DNA from: Piromyces finnis finn | Lineage: Eukaryota; Fungi; Neocallimastigomycota | Direction: 5' to 3' | Length of the DNA: 64,000 nt | Assembly (NCBI GenBank): GCA_002104945.1 | Contig: MCFH01000035.1 | Location: 248,001 to 312,000, forward strand | Shown: positions 13,616 to 24,649 of the stretch, in pieces | How positions within the stretch are numbered: the stretch's first letter is position 1 | Layout of the letters: each line of letters begins with the position of its first letter | Made by a program: the position numbers and the translations under genes | Notes under the pieces: generated by a model | The model's database searches: none | Told to the model about the DNA's origin: nothing | Seen by the model: the letters and a program-made list of their open reading frames with translations, nothing else

Positions 13616-16600
13616 TTAAATAGATTTTAAGGATGAAAAGAATTCTTTATTTCCATTGTTTATTGAAAATATATTATTTTCATTCATATATTCATCAAAT
13701 ATATTTGGATTGTATTTCATTAAAACTTTAATTAAATTATAATTATGATGATCAAATGAAACAGTAAGAGCTGAATCCTTACAACGATCCTGTATATTGA
13801 CGTTAGCTTCATGTTCTAACAGATAGCTTACAATATCAATATTTCCTTGTTCACATGCATAAATTAAGGGTGTATCATTAAATTTATTTTGATGATTTAC
13901 TTTTGCACCATGTTCGATGAAGTATTTAATTTTAAGTATATGTCCTTCTTCACAGGCTTTCATTAATGGAGTACTACCATATTCATTCTGAATATTAATT
14001 TCCGCGCCTTGATTAATTAAATCAACCAATAAGTTATAATAAATTGGTAAATCTTTAAAAATGTTCTTATTATTCATTTGTATCATAAATTGGTTTTTAT
14101 CCGCACCATGCTCTATAAGATAGTTAACAATAGAATATTGATTATTTTCATAGGCAATTATTAATGCTGAATGGCCGGATGAATTAATTTGATTGACATT
14201 GACTTTATGGTCTATTAAATATTTTACAATAGACATAAAACCAAATTTACAGGCCTTCATTAAAGCAGAATATTGACTTTTTGTCGAACTATTAACGTCA
14301 ACCCCATGATGGACCAAAAATTGAACAGTCTCAATATCACCTTTTTCACATGCCATTAGAAGTACCGACCTTCCATAGACATCCTTCTTATTGAGATCCA
14401 TTTGATCACAATAATCAAAACATTGGGTAATAAGACTAAAATACCCTTTTTTATAGGCATTAATAATGAATTGATCGTCTATACTTGAAACTAGTTCTTT
14501 TAAACTATAATTTTCAGGATCTTTGATCCATTTCTTTATATTCATCGTCTCTTTTGTAATATGAATTAATAGGATAATTCCATAGGTTTCCGATACAGTA
14601 ATGTCTTTGGCATATCTTATAATAAATTTACATAAATTGATATTAATAGAGGTCAATGGTATAATAAATACTTGTAATCCTTCATCAATTTCTTCCTCCT
14701 CCTCCTCCTCCTCTTCTTCTTCAATGTTTTCTTCTTCTTCTTCTTCTTCCATTGTCCTAATTAAATAATGAACAATGTCGTAATGAGCGTTTTTATAAGC
14801 ATAAATTACAGCTGAATCATCTTTAACATCACAAAAATCAATAAAAGCATTATTTTCTATTAAATATTTTACAATCCTTAAATTTCCTTGCTGACATGCT
14901 AGCATTAAGGAAGATTGACCTAAATCATTGGTAGTATTAATGTTTGCTTTTTTTTGAATTAAATATTGAACTCGAGATAATTGTCCACTTTTACATGCGT
15001 ACATAAGTGCTGTGAATCCATGTTTATCTTTTTGATTAATATCTAGCCCATGATCAATAACAATTTTAGCTATTTCAAAATCCTTTGTATATTGAGATGC
15101 AAATAAGCTTTGATAATTTGAATTCTTTAGGTTTGAAATGTCGATACCACATTCAATAAAATATTTTAAACCTTCTAAATGACGACTATTGAAAGATTGT
15201 ATTATGGCTTTGGTCCTATTGAAATTTCCAATATTGTTACCTTCCACTAAACGTTTTATCAATTTAAGATTGTTATTTTCACAAGCATATAATAATGCAG
15301 TATACTTATAATTATTGATTACTTCTGTTATGGCACCTTCATGAATTAAATAATTTGCAATTTCATAATTATTTTTTTGACATGAAATAATTAAAGCGGT
15401 ATTATCGTTTCCATCAACTGCATTAATATGAGCACCTCTTTCAACCAAATATTTTACAATTTCCAGACTATTGATATTACATGCAAACATTAATAAAGTT
15501 TTTCCAAAATGATTTGAGGAATTAAGATTAGCACCGTTTTCATTTAAATATCTAATAATTTCAAAAATATCATTTAACATTTTAGTATCTACACAATAAT
15601 TATTATTCTCTTCAAATGTGAAGCTAAGTAAATGATGTGCCGCATTACTATTAATATCGGTTCTGTTGACATCCGCATGATGTTCAACTAAATATTTCAC
15701 CATATTAACATTAATATTTTCACAAGCAAACATTAATGCTGTTTGTTTTGAACTATTGGTAACGTTGATGTTGGCACCATGTTCAACCAAATATTCTACC
15801 ATAGGTAAATCATTATTTTTACTAGCTATTAATAAACCTTCAACAATATAATTTGTATAATTTTTAACAATTAAATTATTTTGTATCAAGTATTGCATAG
15901 TTTCCGTATGATTATTTTCAAAAGCTAGGGTTAATGCGGATTTTTGAAAAACATCATAGGTATTAAGATTAGCTCCATGTTCAATCAAATATTTAGATAG
16001 CTTAAAATAATTATTTTTTAATGCTTTCATCAGGCCCGTTCTTCGCTTAATGTCACATTGATTTACATCAGCACCATGCTCTATTAAATATTTAACAATA
16101 TTATATTGGTTATGTTCACAAGCCATTATTAAAGCAGTCATTCCATCCTTTGCCCGATGATGAATATTTGCACCATGTTTAATTAAAAGTTCTATAACTT
16201 CAATATTATTATTTTTACATGCCAAAGTTAATGCCTGATATCCAAAATCATTTGAGTGGGTAACTTCTGAACCATGTTCAATTAAATAATGAACGATATC
16301 GTAATTTCCATTTTCACTAGCATACATTAATCCAGTATTTTTAACATTATCCATGGCATTGACATCAGAATGATATTGAATTAAATGCTTTACTATATTA
16401 AAGTTATTACTTTGACATCCTTTAATTAGTTCAGATTCACCATACTTTCCTTTCCTATTCATGATACTATTATTTTTTAATAATAATTCAACAATGGAAT
16501 CATTTCCACCTTCACAAGCACATAATAATGCCGTTAATCCGTATTTACTAATACTATTCATATCAGCATGATGGTCAATCAAATATTTTACAATTTTATA

Positions 16601-19600
16601 ATTACCATTTTTGCATGCGTACATTAATGCTGTTCTTTTTTTGATATCTTTTGAATTAACATTAGCCCCCATATCTATCAAAAATGAAGCTATTTCGTAA
16701 CAGCCTTGCTCACATGCCATCATTAATAGAGTCTTTTTAGAATAATCATGAATTGTTTCAATATCACCGCCACTATTTACTAGGCGTTTGAATAGCATTA
16801 CATTATTATTTTCGCATGCTTTTGTTAATGCTGTTATACCATACCTATTAAACATGTTAATATTTGCATTATTTTTAATTAAATAATCAACAATTTCTAT
16901 AGAATTATTTTCACAAGCAATAATTAAAGCTGTGTTGCTACTCTCATTATTCTTATTAACATCAGCACCATGATCAATTAAATACTTTACAATTTCAATT
17001 TGATTATTACTACAACATTTCATTAATAGAGTATTTTGGGTACGATCACAATGAATATTAACATTGGCACCATTATCAATTAATCGTCTTATTATTGCCA
17101 TATTATTATTTTTACAAGCTATATAAAGCGCACTATGGCGTTTATAATCATTAGTATTATAAATATTTACATTTCCACCATGATTTAATAAATAATTTAT
17201 CATTTCAATATTATTATTTTCACATGCCATGATTAATGCGGTATCTCCAATTTTATTTTGATAGTTAATATTCATTCCCATTTCAATCAAGTATTTCATT
17301 AATTCCATTTGATTGTTTTTACACGCCATAATTAGTGCATTATTATTTTGTATATGGTGGGCCCAAATATCTGGTTGCATTTCCATTAAATATTTTGTTA
17401 TCCTTATATTATTTTCTTGACATGCTATAAGAAGAGCCGAATTTTTTTTGAAAGTATTATATTTATTGATATTTGCGCCATGTTCTACTAAATATTTAAC
17501 CATTAGTAAATTATTATTTTGACATGCATAGAAAAGAGGTGTGAATCCTTCTTTATCTTCTTGATTTACATCAATTTTTTGTTCTACTAAATAATTAACA
17601 ATACTCATATTATTTGATTTGCATGCATAAATTAAATTGGTAGTACCATCATTTGTCACTGAATTTATATCTGCTCCATGCTCCACTAAATATTTTACTA
17701 CATCTATATCATTAGTTTGGCATGCCAATAAAAGGGCTGTGTATCCAGAACTACTACAACAATTAATATCAGCGCCATGATCCACTAAATATTTTACTAT
17801 TTTAATATTACTACTGCTTTTACATATGTACATCAATGCAGTAAAACCATGCTTATTCAATTTATTAATTTCTACATCATGCTCTACTAAATAAGAAATA
17901 ATATCAAAATTATTATTTTTACAAGCTAATATTAATTCAGTATCTTCAAAAGCGTTTTCATTATTTAAATTAGCATGATGATCAATTAAATATTTTGTAA
18001 CTTCAGTATCATTATTTTCGATAGCAAACATCAAGGCTGTATAATTTAAATTGTTTGATTTATTAATATCTGCGCCGTGATGGACAAGGTATTTTACAAT
18101 TTCAATATTTTTTTTGATACAAGCTTTCATTAGTGGAGTTGAGCCATGATCATCCACCTCATTGACATTATACCCATTTTTTACTAAAATATCCACTGAT
18201 TCAATATCATTTAATAAGCACTTATTTATTAACACGTTATTTCCTAGAGTGTACTCATTATGGACATTGAATTGTCTTTTTTTTTCAAAAAGATAAACTA
18301 TATCCCAATGACCATGGTCAAATGCCACCATTTGTGGTTGATTACTATAACTATTATACAATTCAATTTTAATATTTTTTTCTAACAGATATTGAACAAT
18401 ATCATAGTACCCCTTCTCACATGCAAATACAATTGGTGTTACACCATAATGATCTGCTTTATTAATATCTGCGCCATGATCTACCAAATATTTTACTAAT
18501 TCTAAGTCTGGAAAAGCTTTCATTAATGCAGTACCTTGGTAATACGAATGTTCATTTAAATCAGCATCATGTTCAACAAGATATTTAATCATTTTAAGAT
18601 CTTTTCTTTCACATGAAATCATTAATAAGGTATCTTCGTAATCTGGTTTTACGTTAGGATCTGCATTCTTCTCCATTAAATAATTTACTAAATCGTCGTT
18701 ATCATATTTATAGGCTAAATAAAGTAACGACTGATTATTAAAACCGAGTACATTAACTGTTCCAAATTTCTTAATAATAAATTTTATCATATCCATATCT
18801 CTTGAAACTACAAACTCTTCAATTGGAACACAAAAATCCTTTGGATTAACATAGGTACTATAATCTATAATAGTTTTACAAACGGATGGATATTTAATGT
18901 TTCTGCCAATTTCTTTATATATATTAATACCATATTCAATTAAATACTTATAAAATGTATGATCTTTTTTTTTAACATATTGTAAATTTAGATAGTAATC
19001 ATTGTATGAACTAACACCATGATTTAATAAAAATTTAATGGTATTGAGATCGGTAGAATTTCCATAATAATAATATTTATTTATTATATATGAAATACCA
19101 GATTCTCCATCAAAATTATTTTTTATAGATGTGTCAGCACCATGTAGAGTTAGATATTCAATAGATTTTGAATTTCCATTTCCACATTCATCTACAAAAA
19201 TAGTTTTTGAGTAATGATCGCTGGTATCATATTTATCGAGGTCTAAACCTTGTTCCATCATAAAGTCAGCTATTTCATAATCATTATTATAAAAGCATGA
19301 ACTTAACATATCTATATAATAAAAATGTCTATTGAATATATTAGGGTCGGCTTTAAAATTCCGCAAGGACTTCAAAACCTCGATAGAGCTGGTTTTCTTT
19401 ACATTTTTTGAAAAACTATTATAAAATATTTTGACACCCTTTTTTATATAATTATTTATATCCGTATCATGAGTTTTTTCCTTTACCATATCATAAAGAT
19501 AGTTAAATGGTATTTTTACGACACCAATTTCTGTATATTCCTTATGTATTTTATTTAATTGGGTATCGGACCATGCTATTTTATTTTTTGAATTTTGAAC

Positions 19601-20275
19601 TAATATCAAGGCATATTTTTCAATATTTTTATTATATTCCTTTATAGCTATGTTTAAATATTTATCAAAATTAGTTTTATTCTTTGATTTATTGCTTTCT
19701 GTAATTTCTTCTATTTCTCCTGTTTCTGTTTCTTCACTATCTAGTAAATTACCAGAAGCAGCATACAATCTTTCTAGAAAATAATTTATATTAACTTTTC
19801 TGTGATATAAAAATTTAAATATATAATCATTTAATAAATTATTATTATAAAGATATATCAATAAATTTTCTCCATATTTATTACAGAAATTAATATCAGC
19901 ACCATGTTCCTCCAATAAATTAAATATTTTTACGTATTGTTTTATTAAAAAAAAGGAAGTTGAGTTTTTCGGAATTGCTTTCTCAAAAGCGACAAATAAT
20001 GGCACCTCATTTTCTTTCGTTTCATAATTCAAACTTGTTTTATACTTTTTACAATTCTTTATTATATATTCAATAATATCGATTGAACCGTTATTATTTA
20101 TTGCATATACTAATAAATCAAAATCTTTGTTATTTATATCGTCAATTTTAAATATATCTTTATTTACTTCTAAAAATAATTGAAAATTGTTTAATACATT
20201 CTCTTCTTTTGAATTTAATATTTTTTTAATTTCAATTGTCTTGTCGTAATTATCATTATTATTATATAAATTCAT
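13616..20275 (-). CDS. Giant intronless ankyrin-repeat protein (2219 aa)
   Basis: One uninterrupted ORF with recurring G.TPL..AC..NN..IVKYLVEHGADIN units at ~33-aa spacing, roughly 45-50 repeats estimated from length. It has a degenerate N-terminal region and a poly-Glu interruption near 14690-14750. Confidence 0.95.
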   Translation of the reverse strand: MNLYNNNDNYDKTIEIKKILNSKEENVLNNFQLFLEVNKDIFKIDDINNKDFDLLVYAINNNGSIDIIEYIIKNCKKYKTSLNYETKENEVPLFVAFEKAIPKNSTSFFLIKQYVKIFNLLEEHGADINFCNKYGENLLIYLYNNNLLNDYIFKFLYHRKVNINYFLERLYAASGNLLDSEETETGEIEEITESNKSKNKTNFDKYLNIAIKEYNKNIEKYALILVQNSKNKIAWSDTQLNKIHKEYTEIGVVKIPFNYLYDMVKEKTHDTDINNYIKKGVKIFYNSFSKNVKKTSSIEVLKSLRNFKADPNIFNRHFYYIDMLSSCFYNNDYEIADFMMEQGLDLDKYDTSDHYSKTIFVDECGNGNSKSIEYLTLHGADTSIKNNFDGESGISYIINKYYYYGNSTDLNTIKFLLNHGVSSYNDYYLNLQYVKKKDHTFYKYLIEYGINIYKEIGRNIKYPSVCKTIIDYSTYVNPKDFCVPIEEFVVSRDMDMIKFIIKKFGTVNVLGFNNQSLLYLAYKYDNDDLVNYLMEKNADPNVKPDYEDTLLMISCERKDLKMIKYLVEHDADLNEHSYYQGTALMKAFPDLELVKYLVDHGADINKADHYGVTPIVFACEKGYYDIVQYLLEKNIKIELYNSYSNQPQMVAFDHGHWDIVYLFEKKRQFNVHNEYTLGNNVLINKCLLNDIESVDILVKNGYNVNEVDDHGSTPLMKACIKKNIEIVKYLVHHGADINKSNNLNYTALMFAIENNDTEVTKYLIDHHANLNNENAFEDTELILACKNNNFDIISYLVEHDVEINKLNKHGFTALMYICKSSSNIKIVKYLVDHGADINCCSSSGYTALLLACQTNDIDVVKYLVEHGADINSVTNDGTTNLIYACKSNNMSIVNYLVEQKIDVNQEDKEGFTPLFYACQNNNLLMVKYLVEHGANINKYNTFKKNSALLIACQENNIRITKYLMEMQPDIWAHHIQNNNALIMACKNNQMELMKYLIEMGMNINYQNKIGDTALIMACENNNIEMINYLLNHGGNVNIYNTNDYKRHSALYIACKNNNMAIIRRLIDNGANVNIHCDRTQNTLLMKCCSNNQIEIVKYLIDHGADVNKNNESSNTALIIACENNSIEIVDYLIKNNANINMFNRYGITALTKACENNNVMLFKRLVNSGGDIETIHDYSKKTLLMMACEQGCYEIASFLIDMGANVNSKDIKKRTALMYACKNGNYKIVKYLIDHHADMNSISKYGLTALLCACEGGNDSIVELLLKNNSIMNRKGKYGESELIKGCQSNNFNIVKHLIQYHSDVNAMDNVKNTGLMYASENGNYDIVHYLIEHGSEVTHSNDFGYQALTLACKNNNIEVIELLIKHGANIHHRAKDGMTALIMACEHNQYNIVKYLIEHGADVNQCDIKRRTGLMKALKNNYFKLSKYLIEHGANLNTYDVFQKSALTLAFENNHTETMQYLIQNNLIVKNYTNYIVEGLLIASKNNDLPMVEYLVEHGANINVTNSSKQTALMFACENINVNMVKYLVEHHADVNRTDINSNAAHHLLSFTFEENNNYCVDTKMLNDIFEIIRYLNENGANLNSSNHFGKTLLMFACNINSLEIVKYLVERGAHINAVDGNDNTALIISCQKNNYEIANYLIHEGAITEVINNYKYTALLYACENNNLKLIKRLVEGNNIGNFNRTKAIIQSFNSRHLEGLKYFIECGIDISNLKNSNYQSLFASQYTKDFEIAKIVIDHGLDINQKDKHGFTALMYACKSGQLSRVQYLIQKKANINTTNDLGQSSLMLACQQGNLRIVKYLIENNAFIDFCDVKDDSAVIYAYKNAHYDIVHYLIRTMEEEEEEENIEEEEEEEEEEEIDEGLQVFIIPLTSININLCKFIIRYAKDITVSETYGIILLIHITKETMNIKKWIKDPENYSLKELVSSIDDQFIINAYKKGYFSLITQCFDYCDQMDLNKKDVYGRSVLLMACEKGDIETVQFLVHHGVDVNSSTKSQYSALMKACKFGFMSIVKYLIDHKVNVNQINSSGHSALIIAYENNQYSIVNYLIEHGADKNQFMIQMNNKNIFKDLPIYYNLLVDLINQGAEINIQNEYGSTPLMKACEEGHILKIKYFIEHGAKVNHQNKFNDTPLIYACEQGNIDIVSYLLEHEANVNIQDRCKDSALTVSFDHHNYNLIKVLMKYNPNIFDEYMNENNIFSINNGNKEFFSSLKSI

Positions 20276-21303: not shown

Positions 21304-24300
21304 TTAATTAAGTCCTGGAGTGGTCCAAACAGAAATTCTTTTGTCACTCTTACGAGTCATATTAGTAGATGGGTATTTTTCGCTCATTAATTTAGAAACA
21401 ACTTGTTGGTGTTCAATCTTCATTCTCTTACCAACACGATCATATCTAACTAATGGATCAATTGAATAACGTTCTTGACGTTGAATATTATCACAGGTAC
21501 AACCTAATAATTGCCAGTACATCTTTTCATGTTTGGTAAGAACAGATGGTCCATCAATACCATCATTACTTTCAGCATACCAGTTTTCTGGTTCACCCAT
21601 CATTTGTAATACCCAAGCTAAATCCATAGCGGATAAAGTAGAGTAAGCTAAACCATTTCCTTGTTCCCAGAATGGTTCAACTAAGGCATCACCTATCATG
21701 GCAACAAATAAGGCCTTCTTTGGTGTGTTATCCTTATTTTCTTTTAATAATTTTTCATTCTTTGCAATTTCAGCTTCACGACGAAGACGAGCGGCTTCTT
21801 CTTCATCAATAGCCTTTTGCTTTTCTTTCTTTTTATTAAGTTCAAGAGCTTCTTTTTCAAATTCTTCTGGAAGAACCTTTACATGGTTTCTTTCTTCTTC
21901 TTCCTTTAAGAGTCTTAATCTTTCCTTTTCAGCTTCCTTTGCCTTTCTTTGTTCTTCAAGGGCTTCCTTAATTAAAATTTCATCTTCTTCTCTACCCTTT
22001 CTAAGGACTTCTTCCTTTCTTTTCTTTTCTTCTTCTTCCTTTTTCTTTAATTCCTTTTGCTTTTCACTCCATGTTGGTCCTGTTTGAACTGGTGCTGGAG
22101 CTGGATTTTCCTTTTTCTTTTCTTCTTCTTTTTGTTGAGCAAAAGCTTTTTGTCTTTCACTCCATGTTGGTCCAGTGCTCTTTGGAATCTTAAGATCCTT
22201 TTCCTTTGGCTTATCAGCGTTTGCAGTAATAGATTCCCATTTATTGACATTAATTTTTGAAACCTTCTTTACTAGTTCAGGCTTCTTAACATTATTGTCA
22301 TCAGAAACTTGAGCAAAGAAACTCATTCTTTTAGAAACTAAACCTGATAAGTTTTTAGATGGGAAATCTTTTGGCTTGCTGGAGAAACTCTTTTGTTGCT
22401 GTTGTTGTTGTTGCTGTTCGAAAGCACGAAGAGAATTTCTTGAAAGTGGTCTTGGAATTGGACTAGAAGAACCACCTCTTCTTCTTAATTCATTCATTAA
22501 TCTAGCATCTTCATCCATTTTTTTCTTAGCAAGAGCAGCTTCTTCCATTCTTCTTTTAGCATCTTCTTCAGCTCTCTTCTTTCTTGCTTCTTCTTCGGCC
22601 TTTCTCTTAGCTTCTTCTTCAGCTTTTCTCTTAGCTTCTTCTTCGGCCTTCTTTTTAGCTTCTTCTTCGACCTTCTTTCTAGCTTCTTCTTCGGCTTTTC
22701 TTCTGGCTTCTTCTTCTGCCTTTCTTCTAGCTTCTTCTTCTGCCTTTCTTCTGGCTTCTTCTTCCTTACGCTTTCTTTCAATTTCTAATTCCATTTCTCT
22801 TCTGCGCTTCATTCTATCATTATATATTTCTTCCTTTTCAATTCTTTCTTTATTTGGAATTCTCTTTATAATTTTTTGTGGTGGTTCAACCTTTGGTGGA
22901 GTATATTCAAATGGCTAAAAAAAAAATTTATAAAATAATTATATATCATAAGTATTATTATAAATTAATTTAAATAGAATACATTTATAGTTATTCTTGT
23001 GTTGCCTTTTTTTAAAATGACTTTTTAAAGTAAAAATCGAAAATAAATAAATAAAAAAAATATTTCTTATATTACCTCAACTAAGAATTTACTTGGTTTA
23101 TTAGAACAATGACGTTCTGAAATATTATAAATTCCAATGAATGGTTTATTAGATTTATTTGAAATAGATAAAAGACAGGTAGCTGGGATTTTACATTTAT
23201 CAGCAACTCTTCTAAGATAGGTTGCTAAAATGTCGTAATTTACATTTTCTGGTTCTAATAATTCATCTAAATCATCTCTATCTTCATTTAAAACACCAGT
23301 TTCTAATAAGTTTTCCTTACTAGGAGTGGTTAAAATGAAATGTGTTTCATCAGCATTGTAAATAATATTTGAAAATTGAACAGCACAAACACCATGTTTA
23401 AATGGAGCATATTTAGCTTTACTTAAATTTGAAATACTGTTATCAGTATCAAAATTTGCAGTTATAGCAATATCATGAAGACCAGGAATAACTTGTCTTT
23501 CAAAGTTAAATTCCTTCATTATATTTGTATTATGACCTGAAGCATCAACTAATACATTAAATTCATAATTTTTAAGTTCTTCATGTTCAGTTTCAAAAGT
23601 AGCAGTATAATATGGTGATTTTTTGTTATCGAAACGATTAACATATTTATATTCGGAATTTGGATAAACTATTTAATAGTGAGATGAAAAGTTTTTTTAA
23701 AGAAAACAGAAAATGAAAAGGATTATTTGAGTTATTTATAATATTTTATATAAAATTTTATAACAAAATATGGCAATATTAAAATAAAATATTATATATT
23801 AATAGTTAATTATAAATTTGTGTTTCTAAAATAATTACCTCTTACACCAAGAATAAGTGCAATTTTTAATAAGCAAAGTTGAAGTCTCTTTGTAGAGATT
23901 AAATCGTGTCCATGAACACCAAATTCTTTATAGAGATCTCGAACACCCAAATCACGAAGATCGATAAGATCGAAATCCCAAGCTTCTAAAATTTCAGTTC
24001 TATCAAAGAAATTCTTCTTTTCAGCAACAACGATATTATTGAATTTTAAAAAGGCAGCTTCAATAGCCATTCTAAGACCGGCTGGACCTGCCCCGATAAT
24101 AAGAATGTTTCTTTCTTGTGGATATATTTTTTTATTATCTTCACGATATTCTTCTCTTTTTCTTAAGAATTCTTCGTAAACTTTTGCACTTTTTTGGTAT
24201 TCTTGGGCTTCAAAATGATTATCTAAACCTTTCCATAGTGGACGTAAGTGTGGAATAGTACGGATACTTGCCTTTTTTAAATTGTTATAAACAATTTGTG

Positions 24301-24649
24301 GTTCTTTTGTTTTAACGCTGAAAGTATCATTTTTGACTATTTCTTCAATTTCAAGGAATTCTGGTAAATTTCTCCAAGATTCATCTTCTGGAACAGATAA
24401 ATCAATTGGTGTTGTATCTCTCTTTGGTTGTGGTTTTGATATTGGTTGAATGTTTCTATTGAAAATATTTGCTATTTCATTAGTATTACCACCACCTTCC
24501 TTCATTTTTTCTAATTTATCTACACAAGATTGTTTGTATTCTTGGAAAGCCTCTAAGGTTTCTTCTAAATCATCAGCTTCAACAAATTTTATTAAATTTT
24601 CTTTGACATTTGAAGTGTCAGTCTTTAAAGCAGTAATTCCACCCAACAT
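21304..24649 (-). CDS. MICAL-like FAD-dependent monooxygenase with a large internal charged insertion, 3 exons, ~1004 aa
   Basis: complement(join(21304..22914,23076..23668,23839..24649)); both introns GT-AG and phase-consistent. MICAL MO-domain motifs in order: FVEADDLEETLEAFQE, LWKGLD, ILIIGAGPAGLRMAIEAAFL, ISTKRLQLCLLKIALILGV, YEFNVLVDASG, AITANF, FSNIIY..DETHFILTTPSKENLLETGVL, MIGDALVEPFWEQGNG, SAMDLAW, YSIDPLVRY. No CH or LIM domain follows. Confidence 0.88.
22560..22775 (-). repeat. 24-bp coding repeat encoding (EEEARRKA)n single-alpha-helix type sequence
   Basis: Translation KEEEARRKAEEEARRKAEEEARRKAEEEARKKVEEEAKKKAEEEAKRKAEEEAKRKAEEEARKK inside exon 3 of the monooxygenase gene. Confidence 0.9.

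Follow-up and report, generated by a model that had tools for sequence, protein, structure and literature searches.

The window analyzed here, a 64,000-nucleotide stretch of Piromyces finnis contig MCFH01000035.1 (GCA_002104945.1), carries on its minus strand a three-exon gene (24649-21304) for a predicted MICAL-type monooxygenase whose catalytic domain is interrupted by 400 in-frame codons. The 1004-residue spliced product is identical, residue for residue, to a public protein (ORX46412.1, BCR36DRAFT_405693, UniRef A0A1Y1V5F7; P0176 in our sequence set), and the insertion is already part of the public P. finnis gene model. The model aligns end to end with orthologs of 956 to 1006 residues, and both of its introns run GTAAT..AG. 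The region is strongly AT-rich, with a GC content of 9 to 16% in intergenic DNA and 20 to 40% in exons.

Sequence comparisons, for which databases were searched exon by exon or with P0176 or its ortholog P0009 (92% identical), place the product in the MICAL family. The GxGxxG motif reads GAGPAG at residues 185 to 190 and occupies invariant columns of a 45-sequence family alignment. Exon 2 matches the Pfam family PF25413 (Rossman_Mical) at 55 bits (range, 51 to 55 bits) against a cutoff of 27, the match spanning profile positions 40 to 106 of 130. The segment GDALVEPFW, from residue 876, aligns to MICAL1 from residue 385 onward and to MICAL3 from residue 426 onward (E values of 4e-10 to 3e-8), and its G, D, P, and W are invariant in the same alignment. 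The monooxygenase domains of MICAL1 and MICAL3 in the Protein Data Bank (PDB entries 2bry, 2c4c, 4txi, 6ici, 9ewy, and 8y6k) share the GxGxxG motif, the PF25413 region, and the GD/EPFW segment with the P. finnis protein at 28 to 32% identity. Compared with MICAL1, the fungal protein has a longer N-terminal region, so that GxGxxG comes about 90 residues later, and its 400-residue insertion takes the place of the few residues at MICAL1 positions ∼380 to 385. Unlike MICAL1 and MICAL3, it has no CH domain, LIM domain, or C-terminal coiled coil, and it reads EPFWEQGNG rather than EPFWPxGTG. Pfam searches of the window protein matched only flavin adenine dinucleotide (FAD)/Rossmann families and returned no CH, LIM, or C-terminal coiled-coil (bMERB) domain.

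Site and retention of the insertion

Alignments to PDB sequences were used to locate the insertion within the fold. Exon-2 residues 29 to 157 align to MICAL1 204-340 and MICAL3 245-383, exon-2 residue 157 pairing with MICAL1 340, and the last 40 residues of exon 2 account for MICAL1 ∼341-380. Exon-3 residues 401 to 500 align from MICAL1 385 and MICAL3 426, starting at the strand before the GD motif; this strand, ALFVAMIGDALVEPFW, begins at exon-3 residue 401. Because the exon-2 tail covers MICAL1 ∼341-380 and exon-3 residue 401 corresponds to MICAL1 385, exon-3 residues 1 to 400 have no MICAL1 counterpart. The insertion site is the loop just before the GD-motif strand of the FAD-binding domain. 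An initial annotation, made from the sequence alone, had described a coding insertion of about 1200 nt inside the monooxygenase fold, at a position where MICAL1 has only a few residues, with a phase-0 intron at its edge. Its coordinates are exact, and the 400 codons are open. The reading frame is not a chance one: its ratio of nonsynonymous to synonymous substitution rates (dN/dS) is low, and the public protein is identical. The PDB alignments likewise put the insertion between MICAL1 ∼380 and 385, in a loop that MICAL1 and nearly all family members keep short, and the intron (22915-23075) abuts the insertion precisely, at the 5' edge.

AlphaFold2 was run on the ortholog P0009 with the 45-sequence family alignment. 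The catalytic parts of the model were predicted with a predicted local distance difference test score (pLDDT) of ∼90, and VIA-align superposed model residues 12 to 960 onto residues 7 to 473 of a MICAL monooxygenase chain (Z of 42 to 43; root mean square deviation of 2.0 to 2.2 Å; 448 to 449 residues aligned). With 6ici, 2bry, and 2c4c as targets, the aligned range of the model extended over residues 12 to 963, at a root mean square deviation of 2.1 to 2.2 Å. The next-best folds were other PHBH-type flavoenzymes, at a Z of ∼21 to 23. In this model, the two enzyme halves assemble into one MICAL fold despite the insertion, which answers in the affirmative a question that the initial annotation had left to structure prediction. 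The insertion exits after the strand at residues 462 to 466 and reenters at the strand at residues 862 to 867. Because the reentry strand is a parallel Rossmann strand with the FAD-binding GD motif at its C-terminal end, the loop should lie at the edge of the sheet opposite the FAD site, and a position away from the cofactor would explain why the enzyme tolerates so large an insertion.

Two transcript-like contigs from related fungi keep the insertion. Contig L003, from the Logan assembly of SRR9694920, encodes the Anaeromyces robustus ortholog uninterrupted; on the A. robustus genome its alignment is split by two introns into three blocks, the last of which (1578 nt) holds the entire insertion. 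Contig L001, a Piromyces-like sequence from JGI sample 3300030700, is 89% identical to the window in nucleotides, or 84 to 90% across the three exons, and maps in three blocks that end at the window's exon boundaries (23839, 23668-23076, and 22914), again with the insertion kept. Since both contigs lack the genomic introns, they derive from spliced RNA, and the expectation that a single transcript retains the insertion is borne out in these relatives.

A trivial explanation for the interrupted domain could be an artifact of the gene model, the insertion being an unspliced intron or the two halves being separate genes. The transcript support comes from relatives rather than from P. finnis reads, and the models of Neocallimastix californiae and Pecoramyces stop just before the insertion. 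Yet the intronless contigs of two relatives hold the insertion in frame between both halves, the codons are under purifying selection (below), neither half alone would make a complete FAD fold, and the short models, at 464 residues, end at the exon-2 boundary, as is typical of truncated gene calls. We therefore regard an artifact as extremely improbable. These two models (P0209 and P0211) end in ...SKFLAE(V), the exon-2 boundary, and look truncated. The initial annotation had warned that motif-based annotation would likely miss the domain or split the gene; this appears to have happened in N. californiae and Pecoramyces, whereas the models of P. finnis, A. robustus, and N. lanati are full length.

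The insertion is also conserved. Of the Neocallimastigomycota proteins retrieved, 19 are full length, and all 19 contain both halves of the enzyme; in the 15 of 15 whose insertion could be measured it spans 355 to 409 residues, with none below 300 between the flanks; the set includes Piromyces, Anaeromyces, and two Neocallimastix paralogs. Length in orthologs, which had been named as a check on the insertion, thus stays within this range throughout the measured set. Codon-level comparison of the window with L001 and L003 gave a dN/dS of 0.07 to 0.18 for the insertion and 0.04 to 0.29 for its three subparts, beside 0.07 to 0.22 for the flanking enzyme segments, at a dS of ∼0.2 to 0.8. These values indicate that the insertion is under purifying selection as a protein. 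Long invariant blocks that are not repetitive are common to Piromyces, Anaeromyces, and Neocallimastix.

Composition of the insertion

The initial annotation had listed a Pro-rich start, an (EEEARRKA)n repeat, an S/R/P patch, poly-Gln, and later E/K/R-rich blocks, and every one of these is present. Its picture of a single charged rod of ∼400 residues held only in part: the ER/K helix and the later charged helices are rod-like in prediction, but a basic, disordered middle of ∼137 residues separates them. The coordinates of these elements and of the gene are collected in Table 1.

Table 1. Features of the MICAL-type gene and its insertion (window coordinates)
Feature	Position	Strand	Description
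Whole gene	21304..24649	-	Three exons, 1004 aa, identical to ORX46412.1
Exon 1	23839..24649	-	Protein 1-270 and the first base of codon 271; helical N-terminal region, GAGPAG at 185-190
Exon 2	23076..23668	-	Protein 271-468; central monooxygenase part with PF25413 match; C-terminal ...SKFLVE
Phase-0 intron	22915..23075	-	GTAATA..AG; abuts the 5' edge of the insertion exactly
Exon 3	21304..22914	-	
Insertion	21715..22914	-	Protein 469-868; 1200 nt, 400 codons, open and in frame
Pro-rich linker	22849..22914	-	Protein 469-490; low pLDDT
Long ER/K helix	22483..22848	-	Protein 491-612; ∼18 nm if helical; 70% charged
24-nt tandem repeat	22551..22764	-	8.8 copies; encodes eight or nine EEEA[RK][RK]KA units
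Basic middle	22072..22482	-	Protein 613-749; ∼137 aa, mostly disordered; S/P patch, poly-Gln, conserved short helices
Near-invariant motif LSGLVSKRMSFFAQVSDD	22297..22350	-	Protein 657-674; short helix in the insertion-only model
Conserved motif PELVKKVSKINV(N/K)KWESIT	22225..22281	-	Protein 680-698; core like Lifeact KKFESIS
GPTWSE(R/K)QK, two copies	22048..22173	-	Protein 716-726 and 747-757
Two E/K-rich helices	21727..22071	-	Protein 750-814 and 818-864; ∼115 aa, ∼17 nm; pLDDT 74-90
C-terminal monooxygenase part	21304..21714	-	Protein 869-1004; GDALVEPFW from residue 876; stop codon at end

Residues 491 to 612 carry the sequence signature of an ER/K single alpha-helix (SAH) rather than of a coiled coil. 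SAH domains of this type occur in myosin VI, myosin X, and caldesmon. Within the core of the helix (residues 517 to 584), 76% of residues are charged, the density of ion pairs is 0.54 to 0.59 per residue, and the hydrophobic occupancy of heptad a/d positions is at most 0.12. The helix was continuous in both AlphaFold2 predictions, as residues 488 to 611 of the full-length P0009 model and as residues 22 to 146 of a model of the insertion only (pLDDT of 85 to 89 in the latter), and it may behave as a single helix. Like known SAH domains, it combines a long unbroken helix prediction with more than 70% E/K/R, a pattern of E at position i and K/R at i+4, and no hydrophobic seam. Unlike them, it is embedded in a catalytic-domain loop, from which the chain must return, rather than serving as a lever or spacer between two separate domains. 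The number of strict octad matches in the block ranges from two to seven among the sequences compared, and the copy number of the repeat differs between orthologs.

The middle of the insertion has a net charge of +14 (residues 613 to 750). The motif GPTWSE(R/K)QK, duplicated in the window protein, is present in one copy in Anaeromyces and Neocallimastix. The second helical region contains some hydrophobic residues and enters the GD strand via a linker of 8 residues. Roughly 60% of the insertion would then be rod-like helix, with the best-conserved nonrepetitive sequence in the flexible middle.

Could the second helical region dimerize the enzyme through an intermolecular coiled coil? Residues 750 to 864 have 17 to 18% hydrophobic residues and an a/d occupancy of up to 0.5, both above the values of the first helix. 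That occupancy is, however, no higher than in a control helix from an ordinary globular domain; the region is also 60 to 68% charged and is broken by a proline at residue 817. Oligomerization through these helices is, in our judgment, very unlikely.

A second alternative is intramolecular: the charged helices, or else the basic middle, would fold back onto the monooxygenase domain and gate access of NADPH or substrate. In animal MICAL1, the C-terminal coiled-coil region autoinhibits the enzyme, and structures of autoinhibited MICAL1 have been solved (8y6k). The last helices of the insertion join the core via only about 8 residues and are hence held near the catalytic domain, and the protein has no other appended domain by which the enzyme could be regulated. 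Against an autoinhibitory module, Pfam matches the insertion to neither bMERB nor another family, the pLDDT of the helices is equal with and without the catalytic domain and so gives no sign of a packing interface, and the first helix lacks a hydrophobic face. We consider autoinhibition unlikely.

Searches with the insertion itself returned little. Pfam searches of its three subparts (E values up to 5) gave only subthreshold compositional matches (Cornifin and RisS_PPD), an ESM Atlas search with the insertion gave nothing beyond a 0.79 lead, and a word search with residues 613 to 760 recovered only orthologs. Troponin T and a Legionella effector, hit in the PDB sequence search, were discarded as matching solely through the charged repeat.

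Two further features of the locus were noted. A second, smaller lineage-specific stretch lies in the N-terminal helical region (24323-24475; protein ∼59-109), where about 50 residues have a pLDDT below 50. The neighboring minus-strand open reading frame (13616-20275), of 2219 residues and unbroken, shows by eye many tandem ankyrin-like repeats and an acidic poly-Glu stretch, and it is likewise adjacent in the public record.

The loop across the MICAL family

To see how far the insertion extends through the family, an exhaustive HMMER search with the preinsertion part of P0009 was made, which returned 791 relatives, and the length of the loop was measured in the best 150 of 791 representatives as the distance from the end of the N-terminal match to the start of the GD-strand match. 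All Neocallimastigomycota proteins fall into one cluster at 50% identity. The next matches, at 32 to 43% identity, are from Amoebozoa (Protostelium and Balamuthia) and chytrids (Nowakowskiella and Phlyctochytrium). In more than 140 other family representatives, the loop has mostly ∼4 to 5 extra residues and in a few up to 19. There are three exceptions: 41 residues in a mite (P0159:515-555), 58 S/P/T-rich residues in Phlyctochytrium planicorne (P0148:720-785), and 101 S/P/N/D-rich residues in an ENA eukaryote protein (P0057:395-505). The loop before the GD strand appears to be an insertion hot spot; it is evidently permissive, and only Neocallimastigomycota show an expansion of this size and composition.

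These exceptions bear on the possibility that the insertion is a low-complexity expansion, largely neutral and kept because it is harmless, at a loop that tolerates insertions in a genome rich in AT and prone to repeats. Stretches of this kind, S/P/N-rich, occur at the same loop in other lineages (the 101, 58, and 41 residues above); the ER/K block is encoded by a 24-nt tandem repeat, present in different numbers of copies in different orthologs; and Pfam detects no known domain in the insertion. Set against this are the dN/dS of 0.07 to 0.18 across the insertion (at a dS of ∼0.3 to 0.8), the invariant nonrepetitive blocks shared by Piromyces, Anaeromyces, and Neocallimastix, and the length of 355 to 409 residues in every measured full-length sequence. 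A neutral expansion without specific function seems to us quite unlikely.

The initial annotation had also supposed that the insertion replaces missing CH and LIM modules. Those modules are indeed missing by Pfam, but replacement does not follow: the closest relatives outside Neocallimastigomycota, in Amoebozoa and chytrids, are likewise devoid of CH and LIM, and the insertion is absent from them. Because these relatives lack the domains as well, the insertion is not a replacement of lost CH/LIM, and animal-type accessory domains were probably never present in this line. The simple MICAL-like proteins of Protostelium (P0016), Balamuthia (P0018), Nowakowskiella (P0019), and Phlyctochytrium (P0022 and P0148) resemble the window protein in having no CH or LIM domain; they differ from it at the loop, which has only 4 to 17 extra residues in four of the five; that of P. 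planicorne has the 58 noted above. A. robustus has an intron at the matching 5' junction of the insertion, and none was found at the insertion site in the three chytrid homologs examined as DNA (L005, L006, and L007).

Other, unusual domain combinations were seen in the family. The P. planicorne model (P0148, L006) contains a short-chain dehydrogenase domain along with the MICAL domain, which may reflect a fused gene call, and protein P0028 combines EF-hands with a MICAL domain. Literature searches on MICAL with Neocallimastigomycota, chytrids, or Amoebozoa found nothing relevant to this gene; the enzyme variant is present in public protein sets, and the searchable literature yielded no account of it.

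A putative spacer and docking arm in an anaerobic lineage

In light of the retention, selection, and composition described above, we think it reasonably probable that the gene encodes a MICAL-type enzyme with a translated, selectively constrained composite arm that serves as both spacer and docking device. On this proposal, the hairpin loop preceding the GD-motif strand would have expanded into a lineage-specific arm of ∼400 residues. A flexible Pro-rich linker would be followed by an ER/K helix of ∼122 residues, grown partly by expansion of the 24-nt repeat; a basic, disordered middle of ∼137 residues would bear the invariant short amphipathic helices; and ∼115 residues of charged helices would lead straight back into the catalytic core. 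The stiff helices could hold the conserved basic motifs some 15 to 18 nm from the catalytic domain, where these motifs would bind a partner. The arm would in this way supply the targeting that animal MICALs get from domains appended after the catalytic domain. F-actin is the leading candidate for the partner, a choice that we offer tentatively, as possible rather than likely.

Several points weigh against a spacer and docking arm. The transcript support is drawn from relatives of P. finnis, and the orthologs compared are fairly close (80 to 92% identity), which limits the weight of their conservation. The insertion-only model has a predicted template modeling score (pTM) of 0.22, that is, no confident tertiary packing; the conserved motifs of the middle have low pLDDT in both models and form short helices at low confidence only; and in the searches run these motifs matched neither a Pfam family nor another MICAL protein significantly. 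How the arm would be placed relative to the core and the FAD site is derived from the fold. Finally, plain low-complexity expansions at the same loop elsewhere (P0057 and P0148) mean that part of the length may be tolerated rather than used.

One lead toward F-actin is a short motif. Lifeact consists of the first 17 residues of yeast Abp140. The KKWE(S/T)I(T/S) core found in the orthologs, NKWESIT in the window protein, resembles the KKFESIS of Lifeact, a string that matches the published sequence. The likeness is one of a short motif only: the leucine and isoleucine ahead of KKFE in Lifeact have no conserved counterpart in this motif. A more specific version of the docking proposal is that the arm is an internal substrate-docking device, in which the stiff ER/K helices would present the Lifeact-like helix (KINVKKWESIT in orthologs, NKWESIT in the window) and its neighbor LVSKRMSFFAQV to F-actin near the D-loop methionines, the targets of MICAL oxidation. 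We rate this version as unlikely. Were it true, the catalytic fold itself would have acquired the targeting function, and this in strict anaerobes for which absence of MsrA and MsrB, the enzymes expected to undo such oxidation, has been reported. When the motif region was used for profile searches of a small set of 174 MICAL-family proteins from outside Neocallimastigomycota, all E values exceeded 0.1, and no match was significant.

Motifs close to Lifeact were also seen in animal Micals, far outside the catalytic domain. The Micals of three flies (Glossina, Drosophila virilis, and D. takahashii) carry GVQNILKRFESMSS or SGVQNILKRFESMSS, near Lifeact's GVADLIKKFESIS, and a beetle Mical (Diorhabda) carries MLRKFET, which together with another sequence fits ML(R/K)KFE(T/S). 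The fly, beetle, and other KxFE motifs lie at P0104:1655-1680, P0112:1610-1640, P0120:1890-1920, P0086:1595-1620, and P0059:1515-1545. A search of the open literature for Lifeact-like motifs found no description of those in fly and beetle Micals and returned one unrelated paper only.

Among redox regulators of actin, the MICAL enzymes are the best known; they oxidize actin at Met44 and Met47 in a reaction that depends on NADPH and O2, and their targeting and control have been studied almost only in animals. The present gene places a MICAL-type monooxygenase, predicted to depend on O2 and NADPH, in an obligately anaerobic fungus. Neocallimastigomycetes are reported to lack both MsrA and MsrB (preprint, bioRxiv 10.1101/2021.02.26.433065), and the lineage would thus have no known reductase for protein methionine sulfoxide formed by an enzyme of this kind. 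These circumstances raise the question of what role an O2-dependent methionine oxidase plays in obligate anaerobes.

The architecture is unusual and clearly selected: a fungal lineage keeps the whole MICAL catalytic fold and puts ∼400 conserved residues into one of its loops rather than appending domains. If the arm is only tolerated low complexity, the gene nonetheless identifies this loop as a place where the fold permits insertions. Should the arm turn out to act in targeting or regulation, it would exemplify, in nature, function built into a loop of a Rossmann fold and would offer a compact handle on how MICAL enzymes recognize their substrate.

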